Below, piece by piece: positions 24,219-31,722 of a stretch of DNA of 64,000 nt. The stretch spans positions 130,856 through 194,855 of the forward strand of contig MCFE01000059.1 of assembly GCA_002104905.1 (NCBI GenBank). The letters run 5' to 3'. The notes beneath the pieces were generated by a model, which searched no databases, was not told where the DNA came from, and worked only from the letters and a program-made list of their open reading frames with translations. Every line of letters begins with the position of its first letter. Positions within the stretch are counted from its first letter, which is position 1. The stretch is from Basidiobolus meristosporus CBS 931.73 (taxonomy: Eukaryota; Fungi; Basidiobolomycota). Position numbers and translations under genes: made by a program.

Positions 24219-25490
24219 ATGGAGGCTATTTGGATAACCTTGATAGCTTTCTGCGTGTGGTTTCTAATCACTATAGTCTCTCTCTACTTCTTCATTCAGT
24301 ATCGCCATGAGCCGACAATCCAGCATCGCTCCGTCAGCCTGACATGCGTGTTTGCATTGTTCAACACGATACTAATCGGCTATCTTCTGTACAAACTTGC
24401 CAAACCCATCACATCGTGCGTGGCTCGGCTGTGGGTCCCCTCTGTCGTCTTTCCGGCTCTTGGTCTCACCGTACTAGCTAAACTGATTCGCCTGACGTTT
24501 CTCGGCAAATATCACAAATCGATATACTTGGAAGCAAAGCTGGGTTCTGTAATGAAGGAGGACGAAATTGGCTATGAAATGGAGCTTTCGGAGGAATCCT
24601 TTGTCAGCACAAAGAATTACGGAAACCTCAGGGAAGCTTGGTACTATAAATATCGCCACCTGTTCACCACATCGTACATTCTCCGCACACTGGCAGCTTT
24701 CATGCTTATGCATATCGGCGTAACGGCCATTGTGAATGCGATCTCTCCCATGACATCGGTACCAGGCCAAGAATGCCCACTTAGTTGGGAGTTCTATCCT
24801 TTTATCGGCTTCTTGGTCGTGTACATGTTTCTGGGGGTTCCGGTGCTGCTTTACTGGTTCTGGAGAATCGAAGACGTGTATGGAATTCGGAAAGAGCTAA
24901 TATCGGTGGCTATCATTGCCATGGTGGGCTTCTTGCTCTATCTAATATTTTTATTCCTTCCGTCCTTGCGTACCCTTGAGAAATCTTTTGCTGCCTACGT
25001 ATGGGGAGTGATTGTACTAATTTTAACTCACACTCTTTTCGTCGTTTACCCCATCTACGAACTAAGAAAATCTCGACTGGTTCGAGCGAACTCTAACAAT
25101 ACCCATGTCTTTGATCAGATCTTGACCGACCCTACTCTCTTCGAGGATTTCAAAGCTTACACCATCAAGGATTTCAGCGTAGAAAACCCGCTATTCTATG
25201 AGCGCTGTAGGAAGCTGCGGGATACACAATCTCGGCTTCGCATCCCCGGAAAAGAATCCATCAACGCCAAGACCCGTAACGAGCTCCTCTCGATGTATGA
25301 GACTTTCATAAACCCAAAATCCGAATTTCAGGTGAACCTTTCCTCTGCAACTATCCTGGAGCTAACAAGACAGTTCGAGTCGGGTGAATTATCACTGAAT
25401 ATGTTTTCGCGAGCGGAGCGTGAAATTCATCTACTAATGTATCAAAACACATTCCCTCGGTACATCAGGTACACCAACATGAAGATTTAG
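24219..25490 (+). CDS. Seven-transmembrane protein fused to a C-terminal RGS domain
   Basis: Seven hydrophobic segments by eye, then RGS-like LFEDFKAYTIKDFSVENPLFYERC...YETFINPKSEFQVNLS...FSRAEREIHLLMYQNTFPRY. Intronless. Confidence 0.85.
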   Translation: MEAIWITLIAFCVWFLITIVSLYFFIQYRHEPTIQHRSVSLTCVFALFNTILIGYLLYKLAKPITSCVARLWVPSVVFPALGLTVLAKLIRLTFLGKYHKSIYLEAKLGSVMKEDEIGYEMELSEESFVSTKNYGNLREAWYYKYRHLFTTSYILRTLAAFMLMHIGVTAIVNAISPMTSVPGQECPLSWEFYPFIGFLVVYMFLGVPVLLYWFWRIEDVYGIRKELISVAIIAMVGFLLYLIFLFLPSLRTLEKSFAAYVWGVIVLILTHTLFVVYPIYELRKSRLVRANSNNTHVFDQILTDPTLFEDFKAYTIKDFSVENPLFYERCRKLRDTQSRLRIPGKESINAKTRNELLSMYETFINPKSEFQVNLSSATILELTRQFESGELSLNMFSRAEREIHLLMYQNTFPRYIRYTNMKI

Positions 25491-26304: not shown

Positions 26305-28348
26305 ATGAAGCCCCTGGAGTTGGCTCAGCAGTTCAAAAGAAGAGGCGCTTTTGACGAAATACGGAAGTGTTTACTGAACGACTTCAAGAATCACGTAACC
26401 CAGCCTTTTGTTTGCCTTTCATTGTTTCCCGTGCTGACTTGTTCTTGGATTTCCACCAAACCGTCTACCCCCTAGGAGCGTGGAAAGAAGTTTCAAGAAT
26501 CCGTGGTGAGAATGCTTACCGAGATCACCACCAGGGATCCTTCTTTATTTAAAAAGGATAGATTCGCCTTCCAAAACCTCATGATGAAGGAGATGGAAAA
26601 GTAAGCGTCGACGCCATCGTGTTTCTATCTTCCTCACAGACCACTCAAGAAACCTTCGTGTTAGAAAAATCTCGCTAGCTGAGGTCGAGCTGGAAACCAA
26701 AAGATTACTCGAGGAAGCCGGCACCTATACTTCTAAGATGGAGAGCGAGCTTCGCGCAATTCTCCAGGCTTCAACCAATCTTCCCAAAGGTACGAAGTCC
26801 CTTGCCATAACTAACGTCCCAAGTGATTTTCTCCTATACTAACGCCCCAGTTCTTTCTGAACACGAACATACGTAGACCATCAACAAGAGACGTCGCAGC
26901 TCAAAAAGCGAGTCAGCGAGGTGCAGAAAAGCAGCCTAGAGGATCCGTTGTCCTTGCTCGATTCGATACTCAGCTTCTCGAATACGGCCACCAACTCTGT
27001 CGATCGGATGAAAAAGAAATCTCTGGAGATTCAAGGAGACCTCACCCGAAAACCCTCTAGTGGCGTGGAGCTGTCACGCCATGATAATTCCTCGCCCCGG
27101 AGAAGTGAATTTCCCAAAAACTCCACTCCACACGGATACTCACCACCACATGCGAGAAAGCAATCCAAAGACGGAAGCACGCCGCGGGCTATCTTGGGTA
27201 GTGCCTCGGAGGACCAGTTCGGCGAAAGCGACAGTAAGTTAGACCTTGACCTCAACTAGATTTCCAGTGCTAAACCAATTGTGTATGGCAGGGTTCGTCG
27301 TCAGACGAAGGAGTTCAACCAAAGATGGTGAGCGATTAAGCTCAAGTGAAAAGGTAAAGCGGACTGGGCCAGCCTCCTGATATCTAGCCCTCCACAGAGG
27401 AGCTTACTGATGCCTGTACATCTAGTTGCGTTTCCAGATTGATCAACGAGTTGCTGCATTCGTGCCGATCGATGGTGATGAACTTCAAGAGAAATGTTAT
27501 ATTGTGGTGGTTCGCAAATATGACCCCGCAACCGAGAAGTATGTCCTCTCGCATAGGTTTTGTCAATGTGGATATGGAGGCTTACATGATTCGGTTGCAT
27601 CTAGGTATGTCGTTAGAGACCCGGAGGCGATTGCTGGAGAGAAAGATACCTGGAAAGTTCCAGAGGACAAAATTTACGATTATAAGCGAAATAAAAAACT
27701 TGTAGAGCGAGGTGAAAACCCGTTTTCGGTCGGCGACAGAGTTTATTCCTTATACAAAGATCGCGAAACGGATGAGACCAGTACAGAATTTTATGAAGCG
27801 GTGATCGAGAAGATTGGAAAGGTAGGTTTATCGAAGACGGCGTCGGTGGTCATTCATGCATGCATACTGAACGATCCACACTTTCGTTGAAGAGCACTGT
27901 CCTGGTGAAATTTCTAGATGATAGCGGTGATACCTCGCGACTGTATTATGACGAGCTCTTCAAAGTGAATAAGGTTCGTCTTTGGCAATCCGATCGAATC
28001 TGAAATGGGATTGCTAAATTTGTAGGGCGTTTGTAGAAGAACATGTTGGCCTTCACTGGACAATCCAAGTACCCAAAAATCAAACTGAAAATCAAGAAAG
28101 AATCACCCAACAACAACATTTCTCGGGATCGAAACAATGTCACCAAAAAATTGACGAACGGGCCAAGCGAAGGGAATGAGCGCAGTGAATCTCCGATAGA
28201 AAATACACAAGATTCGAACGGGTCGTTCAGGAAACAAAAGAGGCGGCGGCTAGTTGCCCTCGTTGACGATGATGATGATGATGATGATGACGACAACGAT
28301 GCTAATGATTCGGCAACGCACAATGAACAAGTCACCACCAATTGGTAG
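26305..28348 (+). CDS. Shg1/BOD1-like N-terminal domain fused to Sgf29-like tandem Tudor domain, acidic tail; about 9 exons
   Basis: The N-terminus reads LAQQFKRRGAFDEIRKCLLNDF...RDPSLFKKDRFAFQNLMMKEM. In-frame introns 27234-27291 and 27354-27425 join it to FQIDQRVAAFVP...KYVVRDPE...FSVGDRVYSLYKDRETDETSTEFYEAVI...VLVKFLDD. Confidence 0.72.
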
Positions 28349-30792: not shown

Positions 30793-31722
30793 TCAAGATG
30801 CTTTTTTATAGATTTCCCGGCACTTTTCCTCTACTTTGTAGTGTCGGTTTAGAGCGTCCGATCTTGGGAAGCTTTTGTAACATGCAATACATTCATAAGG
30901 ACGGTTGCCTGTGTGCAAACGAGTGTGGCGCTGAAGGTCGTGCTTTCTAGCAAATGAGCGAGAACAGAACCCGCAGGAATGCGGGCGGAGATTGGAGTGG
31001 CTACGCATATGTGAAGTGAGATTGTACTGGCGACTAAACGATTTGGGGCAGCCTGGAAATGTGCATTTGAAGCTGTGTGTGGCGCTCAGCTCGCTACAAC
31101 AGGTATTTTTGGAAGGTTTCTCCGGTAGAAAATCTTGGGCACATGCCTTCTTCGAGTGCAATGGAACAGATGTGGGTGCCATCTTAGGCCCTTTGGTGGA
31201 AGGTTCGTAAACTATGAACTTGATCTGCTCCAGGGCCTTGTGGGGCGGAACCATCTCAACATGGCTGTCAATTGTGTTCTCATTGAAATTCAGCGCTTTG
31301 AATACCAAGTTCTCCCAGTCATCGTTTGAGTGTGGAGATGGGTGATTGCTCATCATCTGTGTGATGTCACAGTCTAAAAATAACCGACTCTCCCTAGTTG
31401 GGGTAATAGGTAAGGGGGTTAGCGATTCGCATTCCGAAATCTCGCTTCCAAAATGGTTGAACTCCAGGTCGAGCCCTATCTGCAATGGAGTTGTCAGCAT
31501 GCCCTCCTCAGACGCAAAAGCCCCGTTACAAAACGAAGCGTCAGTGGAATATTTCAACTCCGAGAAAGGGTTGAACTCACACTCTAAGGAATCCGAAAAG
31601 CTGTATGAAATAGCATCCTCGATAAGGGGAGGCGTGTTTATGGCGGGTTGTAGTTGGCCAGGAAAGTAGCTAGAACTTAATATATAGTCACTCACAGAGT
31701 ATTCATTATCAGGGATTGACAT
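30793..31722 (-). CDS. C2H2 zinc-finger transcription factor (three fingers, Crz1/EGR-like)
   Basis: CTFPGCPKSFSRQYNLTSHMRSH, CGFCSRSFARKHDLQRHTRLH-TGNRPYE-CIACYKSFPRSDALNRH. Acidic S/P-rich N-terminus. Confidence 0.9.
   Translation of the reverse strand: MSIPDNEYSVSDYILSSSYFPGQLQPAINTPPLIEDAISYSFSDSLECEFNPFSELKYSTDASFCNGAFASEEGMLTTPLQIGLDLEFNHFGSEISECESLTPLPITPTRESRLFLDCDITQMMSNHPSPHSNDDWENLVFKALNFNENTIDSHVEMVPPHKALEQIKFIVYEPSTKGPKMAPTSVPLHSKKACAQDFLPEKPSKNTCCSELSATHSFKCTFPGCPKSFSRQYNLTSHMRSHSNLRPHSCGFCSRSFARKHDLQRHTRLHTGNRPYECIACYKSFPRSDALNRHYKVEEKCREIYKKAS

Follow-up and report, generated by a model that had tools for sequence, protein, structure and literature searches.

Shg1 (Cps15 in yeast) docks on Set1 in yeast COMPASS, the complex that methylates lysine 4 of histone H3 (H3K4), and BOD1 and BOD1L do so in the human SET1B and SET1A complexes. 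In yeast and fission yeast Shg1 is a small stand-alone protein without a reader domain and, to our knowledge, it is the least understood subunit of COMPASS. Recognition of di- and trimethylated H3K4 (H3K4me2/3) by a subunit of the H3K4 methyltransferase complex is known from the PHD finger of Spp1/CFP1. SGF29's tandem Tudor domain is a different module, and the coiled coil of Sgf29 anchors that protein in the SAGA/ADA acetyltransferase module. Here we describe a gene at positions 26305-28348 of a 64,000-nucleotide stretch of the genome of the fungus Basidiobolus meristosporus CBS 931.73 (contig MCFE01000059.1; the whole stretch is referred to as the window, and positions refer to it unless another locus is named). 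Its predicted product joins an N-terminal Shg1/BOD1 domain to a C-terminal SGF29-type tandem Tudor domain.

The resemblance to Shg1 and to BOD1/BOD1L lies in the N-terminal 105 residues, which match the same family (PF05205); the domain is N-terminal in all of these proteins, but here a long linker and then a tandem Tudor domain come after it. Spp1/CFP1 resembles the arrangement proposed below in that a writer recognises its own product, although it does so with a PHD zinc finger rather than a tandem Tudor domain and on a different carrier subunit. Because Spp1/CFP1 already tethers COMPASS to its product, the principle is not new, whereas the module and the subunit are. With SGF29 of SAGA and ATAC (PF07039; structures 3ME9, 3MET and 3MP1) the protein shares a tandem Tudor fold at the C-terminal end, including the positions of the pocket for residue A1 of H3 (H3A1) and of the methyl-lysine cage (PMC4589357, PMC10630320), but sequence identity is merely 15-22%, the acidic cage loop is longer and a Shg1 domain replaces the coiled coil. 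Fusions of the same reader to other complex-docking domains are present in the ESM Atlas, where ING-SGF29 proteins of green algae make up 86% of one cluster and SAP30_Sin3_bdg-SGF29 proteins of Basidiomycota 25% of one cluster. These differ from the present protein in their partner domains and complexes, and they indicate that the reader module has been recombined repeatedly.

PF05205 and PF07039 occur together in no large ESM Atlas cluster, and we found no paper that joins Shg1/BOD1 with SGF29 or a Tudor domain in one protein, which agrees with an earlier reading of this DNA made from the sequence alone (the sequence-only reading), in which the fusion was not recognised from model fungi. The gene is already in public databases with its two domain labels, and the protein seems to be unstudied. 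Given that both domains belong to known families, that a COMPASS reader is known and that the protein is deposited, the case is an extension of known principles, not a system of a new kind.

Structure of the gene and its product

The region has the look of fungal-type coding DNA interrupted by short introns. Based on direct reading and a frame-checking script, a single nine-exon gene on the + strand spans positions 26305-28348. Its coding sequence is 1482 nucleotides (nt) long, or 493 codons and a stop. The eight introns are all of the GT..AG type and 58-87 nt in length. Retention of an intron would bring an early in-frame stop in six of the eight cases, the exceptions being intron 6, which is stop-free, and intron 7, in which the frame stays open to 27888, near the intron end. 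The exons, together with the introns and codons on which the argument depends, are as follows.

26305..26394, + strand: exon 1, residues 1-30; carries the start codon and the best-conserved stretch of the Shg1/BOD1 domain (K11, G14, F16, D17, R20)
26476..26600, + strand: exon 2, residues 31-72; central part of the Shg1 domain; 79% DNA identity to Basidiobolus ranarum, gapless, versus 34-35% in the flanking introns
26665..26789, + strand: exon 3, residues 72-114; end of the Shg1 domain at about residue 105 (about 26764), followed by a helical stretch (Pfam match 5-105; AlphaFold model)
26877..27233, + strand: exon 4, residues 114-233; linker rich in serine, proline and lysine, probably disordered, matching no Pfam family
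27234..27291, + strand: intron 4, 58 nt, GTAAGT..CAG; first joining intron; if retained, stop at 27257-27259
27292..27353, + strand: exon 5, residues 233-253; short, basic, serine-rich bridge from the linker to the Tudor domain
27354..27425, + strand: intron 5, 72 nt, GTAAAG..TAG; second joining intron; if retained, in-frame stop at 27378
27426..27538, + strand: exon 6, residues 254-291; opening strands of Tudor 1, in which VAAF and C277 are invariant in the family
27539..27604, + strand: intron 6, 66 nt, in frame and stop-free; if retained, a 22-residue insert in Tudor 1
27605..27821, + strand: exon 7, residues 291-363; remainder of Tudor 1 and first half of Tudor 2
27618-27620 and 27624-27626, + strand: codons in exon 7 for the putative H3A1 pocket, D296 and E298
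27753-27755 and 27792-27794, + strand: codons in exon 7 for the putative cage aromatics, Y341 and Y354
27893..27973, + strand: exon 8, residues 364-390; closing strands of Tudor 2, including the putative cage residues F370 (27911-27913) and D372 (27917-27919)
28037..28348, + strand: exon 9, residues 391-493; lysine-rich tail with a KQKRRRLVAL motif and a run of ten aspartates; stop TAG at 28346-28348

The whole-codon translations of the nine exons were found in order and without gaps in the public hypothetical protein K493DRAFT_346855 of B. meristosporus CBS 931.73 (here P0022; 493 residues), in which single residues bridge the split codons. Since all the exon pieces lie in P0022 in order, we conclude that it is the product of the nine-exon gene. 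The exons themselves were scanned singly, and P0022 was used as the full-length sequence after the exon-by-exon match. From its N-terminus onwards, the protein consists of the helical Shg1/BOD1 domain (residues 5-105), some 150 residues of low-complexity linker, a tandem of SGF29-type Tudor domains (about residues 252-393) and a tail, first basic and then acidic. The mean confidence (predicted local distance difference test, pLDDT) of the whole-protein ESM Atlas model is 0.54.

Both domain assignments made in the sequence-only reading were borne out by Pfam, for which the curated cut-offs are 24 bits (COMPASS-Shg1, PF05205) and 23.8 bits (SGF29_Tudor, PF07039). COMPASS-Shg1 matches residues 5-105 of P0022 with 49.6 bits, and residues 1-110 alone score 55.1 bits; even exon 1 on its own, encoding 30 residues, passes the cut-off with 27.5 bits. 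The SGF29_Tudor match is modest, at 30.1 bits over residues 271-378 and 34.4 bits when residues 240-400 are scanned alone, and exon 7 alone scores 16.4 bits, which is under the cut-off. No Pfam match was obtained on the 154-residue open reading frame (ORF) 27426-27887, which reads through from exon 6, because the insert contributed by the intron masks the domain. The public record of P0022 carries precomputed matches to both PF07039 and PF05205, and the UniRef name of the protein is 'SGF29 C-terminal domain-containing protein'.

A whole-protein Pfam scan with hmmscan misses SGF29_Tudor on the B. ranarum proteins P0001 and P0014 (the latter of 487 residues), and the excised domain scores 33.1 bits. 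Detection of the divergent Tudor domain is sensitive to low-complexity context, and automated annotation may under-call the family.

Conservation of the fusion in Basidiobolus and in chytrids

The syntenic locus of B. ranarum (L002, contig JASJQH010007033.1) has the same architecture and the same intron positions, and it encodes P0014. In both Basidiobolus species the gene is flanked upstream by a receptor gene with an RGS domain and downstream, on the opposite strand, by a C2H2 gene. In B. meristosporus these neighbours are:

24219-25490, + strand: upstream neighbour, a 423-residue seven-transmembrane RGS-domain protein; syntenic with B. ranarum
30793-31722, - strand: downstream neighbour, a C2H2 zinc-finger protein; syntenic with B. 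ranarum

In global DNA alignments the domain-coding exons are 70-79% identical between the two species and almost free of gaps (3 gap columns in exon 6), and the introns are 33-50% identical. Exon 7 is gapless at 78% DNA identity, with 66 of 72 residues identical. Exons 4, 5 and 9 are 49-56% identical with indels (56% and 27 gap columns in exon 4), and the annotated ortholog stays in frame throughout. B. ranarum has an intron at the same position as intron 4, and the peptide of exon 5, between the two joining introns, is recognisably conserved (VRRRSSTKDGE vs VKRPSSSHKDGE). Per site, the Shg1 exons show 0.10 non-synonymous changes and the Tudor exons 0.04, while synonymous sites are saturated (pS 0.8-1.0). 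The Shg1 and Tudor halves are therefore both under purifying selection.

With only 58 nt between the halves there is no space for a terminator and a promoter. Judged from the sequence and its comparison with B. ranarum, positions 26305-28348 are one gene and a real fusion, not an accident of annotation. The introns by which the sequence-only reading had joined the two halves (27234-27291 and 27354-27425) proved exact, given the collinearity of the exons with P0022 and the synteny with B. ranarum. Its statement that the Tudor part lacks an in-frame ATG holds for the Tudor exons themselves; within intron 4, however, there is an ATG at 27285-27287, 7 nt before exon 5 and in frame with it. A start at this ATG could in principle yield a Tudor-only product of about 262 residues. 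In B. ranarum this ATG is not conserved, and its counterpart meets a stop after three codons.

Three products are deposited for B. ranarum under one locus tag, with 487, 445 and 316 residues. The 445-residue product starts at a Met in exon 2 and is without the Shg1 core. In the 316-residue product (P0013) the orthologue of intron 6 is retained and the protein ends inside Tudor 1 after 8 further codons. The sharing of one locus tag by three products suggests that this annotation is transcript-informed, and forms without an intact Tudor pair or without the Shg1 core may exist. A search for an account of the annotation procedure used on the B. ranarum assembly found none. The sequence-only reading had also proposed a Shg1-only isoform made by retention of intron 4. 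The predicted stop at 27257-27259 is present in the sequence, but the isoform found no support, the short B. ranarum form retaining the intron 6 orthologue instead and ending in Tudor 1.

With the ORF 27426-27887 as query against 1.84 billion representatives, phmmer returned 12 proteins at E<=0.001; as a single-sequence search it has limited reach. The best match is P0001 from B. ranarum (E 1e-48). The same N-to-C arrangement is found in six chytrid genera, in two of these only when unannotated upstream Shg1 exons are counted. Pfam identifies both domains in the proteins of Batrachochytrium salamandrivorans (783 residues) and Rhizophlyctis rosea (854 residues). In the protein of Chytridiales sp. 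JEL0842 (851 residues) and in the environmental protein P0003 (467 residues) it identifies COMPASS-Shg1 only, and the C-terminal regions of both match the Tudor query and align with the Tudor domain of the family. The N-terminus of the Borealophlyctis protein (1129 residues) matches the Shg1 profile of the family (hhalign 96.6%, E 5.5e-10). The Polyrhizophydium entry (306 residues) was left out of the check for the Shg1 half.

The models of Cladochytrium replicatum (KAI8801853.1) and Polychytrium aggregatum (XP_052964931.1) hold the Tudor half only. In both genomes an unannotated, ATG-bearing ORF on the same strand, 0.6-1.1 kb upstream, passes the COMPASS-Shg1 cut-off (35.1 and 35.4 bits, respectively). 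We conclude that these two public gene models lack their 5' end, with the Shg1 exons missing.

L004:5059-5316: unannotated Shg1 ORF upstream of the Cladochytrium model, identified by Pfam COMPASS-Shg1
L003:4843-5076: unannotated Shg1 ORF upstream of the Polychytrium model, identified by Pfam COMPASS-Shg1

In an environmental contig (L005; ENA ERZ27313155, k141_104913; GC content 44%) P0003 is encoded with both domains in one uninterrupted ORF of 467 codons (106-1509), so the fusion there requires no splicing model. Within the limited reach of the phmmer search the family was found only in Basidiobolus and chytrids. By these sequence comparisons the architecture defines a small family that is conserved across Basidiobolus (Basidiobolomycota) and several genera of Chytridiomycota, and the conservation of the fusion across both groups is evidence of a coupling between the two functions.

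A single match in a collection of prokaryote-only contigs, at a bacterial locus for a membrane-fusion protein and RND efflux (L001), was rejected as due to chance; it shares a short DYKRNKKL-like word with exon 7. No second copy of the gene was found within the 64-kb window. A word search with residues 1-112 did not find a stand-alone Shg1 of 60-196 residues, but this type of search is insensitive and the blank is uninformative. With the whole of P0014, the full-length isoform of P0001, word-index searching returned two proteins, P0022 among them, and with the Tudor region three; the two matches for the whole protein are probably so few because low-complexity words swamped the candidates. A feature search of the ESM Atlas gave no usable match.

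The two domains

The N-termini of all eight family members that were scanned match COMPASS-Shg1 in Pfam; none is convincingly another family and none is EnY2. In the family alignment K11, G14, F16, D17 and R20 are invariant, and the core motif K-R-x-G-x-F-D-x-x-R is present. For residues 1-115 AlphaFold predicts an all-helical fold (pLDDT 79.7). Sequence and profile searches of the Protein Data Bank (PDB) with the Shg1 region and the family alignment found no Shg1/BOD1 chain. Foldseek with the model of the domain returned nothing significant, its best row being Sus1 of the SAGA deubiquitinase module. Sus1/ENY2 is a helical-hairpin protein of that module and of TREX-2. In an exhaustive comparison with VIA-align, five Sus1/ENY2 representatives were the sole rows that combined a low root mean square deviation (rmsd; 4.0-5.7 A) with near-full-chain coverage, at Z of 5.5-6.2. 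As these values lie below the noise level quoted for helical models, we treat a possible likeness of the modelled Shg1 domain to Sus1/ENY2 as a weak lead only. We found no paper that links the Shg1 domain to Sus1/ENY2.

For the C-terminal domain, sequence and profile searches of the PDB with the Tudor alignments did not reach SGF29, and fold comparison was therefore used. AlphaFold2 with a 10-member family alignment predicts two successive five-stranded barrels for residues 248-395 (pLDDT 88.3; predicted template-modelling score, pTM, 0.81). With this model, the top eight Foldseek matches in the PDB are all human SGF29 (template-modelling score, TM, 0.61-0.72; E down to 1e-6), followed by yeast Sgf29 (TM 0.58-0.64); the SETDB1 Tudor domains reach only 0.44. 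Based on VIA-align, the top ten are human and yeast SGF29, with Z of 12.8-13.9 and rmsd of 2.3-3.5 A over 113-129 residues, and the next families are SETDB1 and BAHCC1 at Z 9.4. In the VIA-align register, positions 5-146 of the model lie on residues 152-291 of human SGF29. The nearest clusters of the ESM Atlas are all SGF29_Tudor (TM 0.72-0.76).

In human SGF29 the cage consists of Y238, Y245, F264 and D266, and there is in addition an H3A1 pocket (PMC4589357). The mutants D194A, D196A, Y245A and F264A are defective in H3K4me3 binding (PMC10630320). The putative equivalents are largely retained among the 10 family members. In the pocket, D296 is invariant and position 298 is D or E. In the cage, position 341 is Y, F or H, position 354 is Y and once F, position 370 is F or Y, and D372 is present in nine of the ten. 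The motifs SLY, TSTEFY and VKFLDD, in which the sequence-only reading had seen cage-like residues, are present and conserved across the family. Judged by the model, the C-terminal domain is an SGF29-type tandem Tudor domain in which the ligand-contacting positions are kept.

Canonical SGF29 is absent among the phmmer matches, which comprise only Shg1-linked relatives. Given this result and that of the PDB searches, the domain looks like a separate, divergent subfamily and, considering also its Shg1 N-terminus, the protein is classed as SGF29-like and not as Sgf29. As regards orthology with canonical SGF29, we found no close sequence kinship and a Shg1 domain at the N-terminus, and orthology is not assigned.

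Proposed function and competing explanations

The explanation that we consider best, and hold with reasonable though not high confidence, is that the locus is a single gene with a conserved fusion, the product of which is a COMPASS-docked H3K4me2/3 reader. From what is known of the two domain families, the protein would be docked through its Shg1 domain onto Set1 within COMPASS. Tudor 1 would hold the free N-terminus of H3 in an acidic pocket (D296, E298), and the cage of Tudor 2 (Y341, Y354, F370, D372) would bind K4me2/3. The methyltransferase complex would in this way be tethered to its own product, a situation that would promote retention or local reinforcement of H3K4 methylation. Going by its domains, the protein is probably such a reader. 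If so, these fungi have a COMPASS accessory subunit that reads H3K4me2/3 with a Tudor module known elsewhere from SAGA, and the family would provide a case of writer-reader coupling, a view of COMPASS accessory subunits outside the model fungi and a role for Shg1.

It is unlikely that the protein instead serves this lineage as its Sgf29, reading H3K4me for SAGA/ADA, with an incidental Shg1-like N-terminus and a place in SAGA and not in COMPASS, or in both as a bridge. The fold of the Tudor domain is indeed closest to human and yeast SGF29 and the UniRef name points in the same direction, but phmmer returned only Shg1-linked relatives, the PDB profile searches miss SGF29, and the N-terminus is a clear Shg1 domain (55 bits alone) and not a coiled coil. 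That a separate canonical SGF29 of Basidiobolus did not turn up also speaks for the idea, although no dedicated search for it was made. The sequence-only reading had considered both a read-write feedback loop and a bridge between COMPASS and SAGA. The bridge is the weaker half of that proposal and the less likely one, because the Tudor domain is divergent without canonical SGF29 relatives and the SAGA-anchoring part is replaced by the Shg1 domain.

About equally improbable is that the fusion is real but has another activity, with the Tudor domain reading a different methyl mark or a ligand other than histones, the Shg1/BOD1 domain working outside COMPASS, or both. Metazoan BOD1 acts with PP2A-B56, H3K9me or H4K20me is read by related folds of the tandem Tudor and Agenet types, and the acidic loop of 12-13 residues beside the cage is specific to this family. 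The fusions of SGF29-type Tudor domains to ING in Chlorophyta and to SAP30_Sin3_bdg in Basidiomycota, and the weak resemblance of the Shg1-domain model to Sus1/ENY2, could also be taken in its favour. Against this, the family retains the acidic pocket for the N-terminus of H3 as well as the four cage positions, the fold is distinctly nearer to SGF29 than to the readers of H3K9 and H4K20 (a gap in Z of about 4), and the eight N-termini all belong to COMPASS-Shg1, none to EnY2.

That prediction merged two adjacent genes, one for Shg1 only that ends at 27257-27259 and one for the Tudor half that starts from ATG 27285, is very improbable, since the features in its favour (the stop at 27257 on intron 4 retention and the in-frame ATG, junctions placed from sequence and comparison, and some public chytrid models holding the Tudor half alone) are outweighed by the mere 25 nt between stop and ATG, the lack of conservation of that ATG in B. 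ranarum, the conservation of exon 5 as a peptide, the independent annotation of the same domain order in several chytrids, the same-strand upstream Shg1 exons that the Tudor-only chytrid models miss, and the single uninterrupted ORF with both domains in contig L005.

Several points weigh against a COMPASS-docked H3K4me2/3 reader encoded by one gene. The membership in COMPASS and the binding of methylated H3K4 are predicted for all family members from their domain families. The residues were matched to those of human SGF29 by us, from motifs and strand register and not from an alignment computed by a tool. The loop between the cage aromatics has 12-13 residues, is acidic and has a near-invariant TEFY end, versus 6 residues in human SGF29, and this longer acidic loop could change the specificity. 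With regard to the gene, the splice junctions of B. meristosporus were placed from sequence and comparison rather than from reads that cross them, ATG 27285 is in principle able to start a Tudor-only product, and the transcript basis of the three B. ranarum isoforms is judged from their one locus tag.

A wider view, which we put forward only tentatively and think rather doubtful, concerns the early-diverging fungi as a whole. In these, the Shg1 of COMPASS may carry its own SGF29-type H3K4me2/3 reader, such that the writer would be tethered to its product through a Tudor domain, besides or instead of the PHD finger of Spp1. The short Shg1 of yeasts, which carries no reader, would then be a reduced form or, should the fusion have arisen inside these lineages, a different one.

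The KQKRRRLVAL motif and the acidic run of exon 9 are also kept in P0014 of B. ranarum. This tail may combine a nuclear localisation signal with a histone-binding acidic patch.

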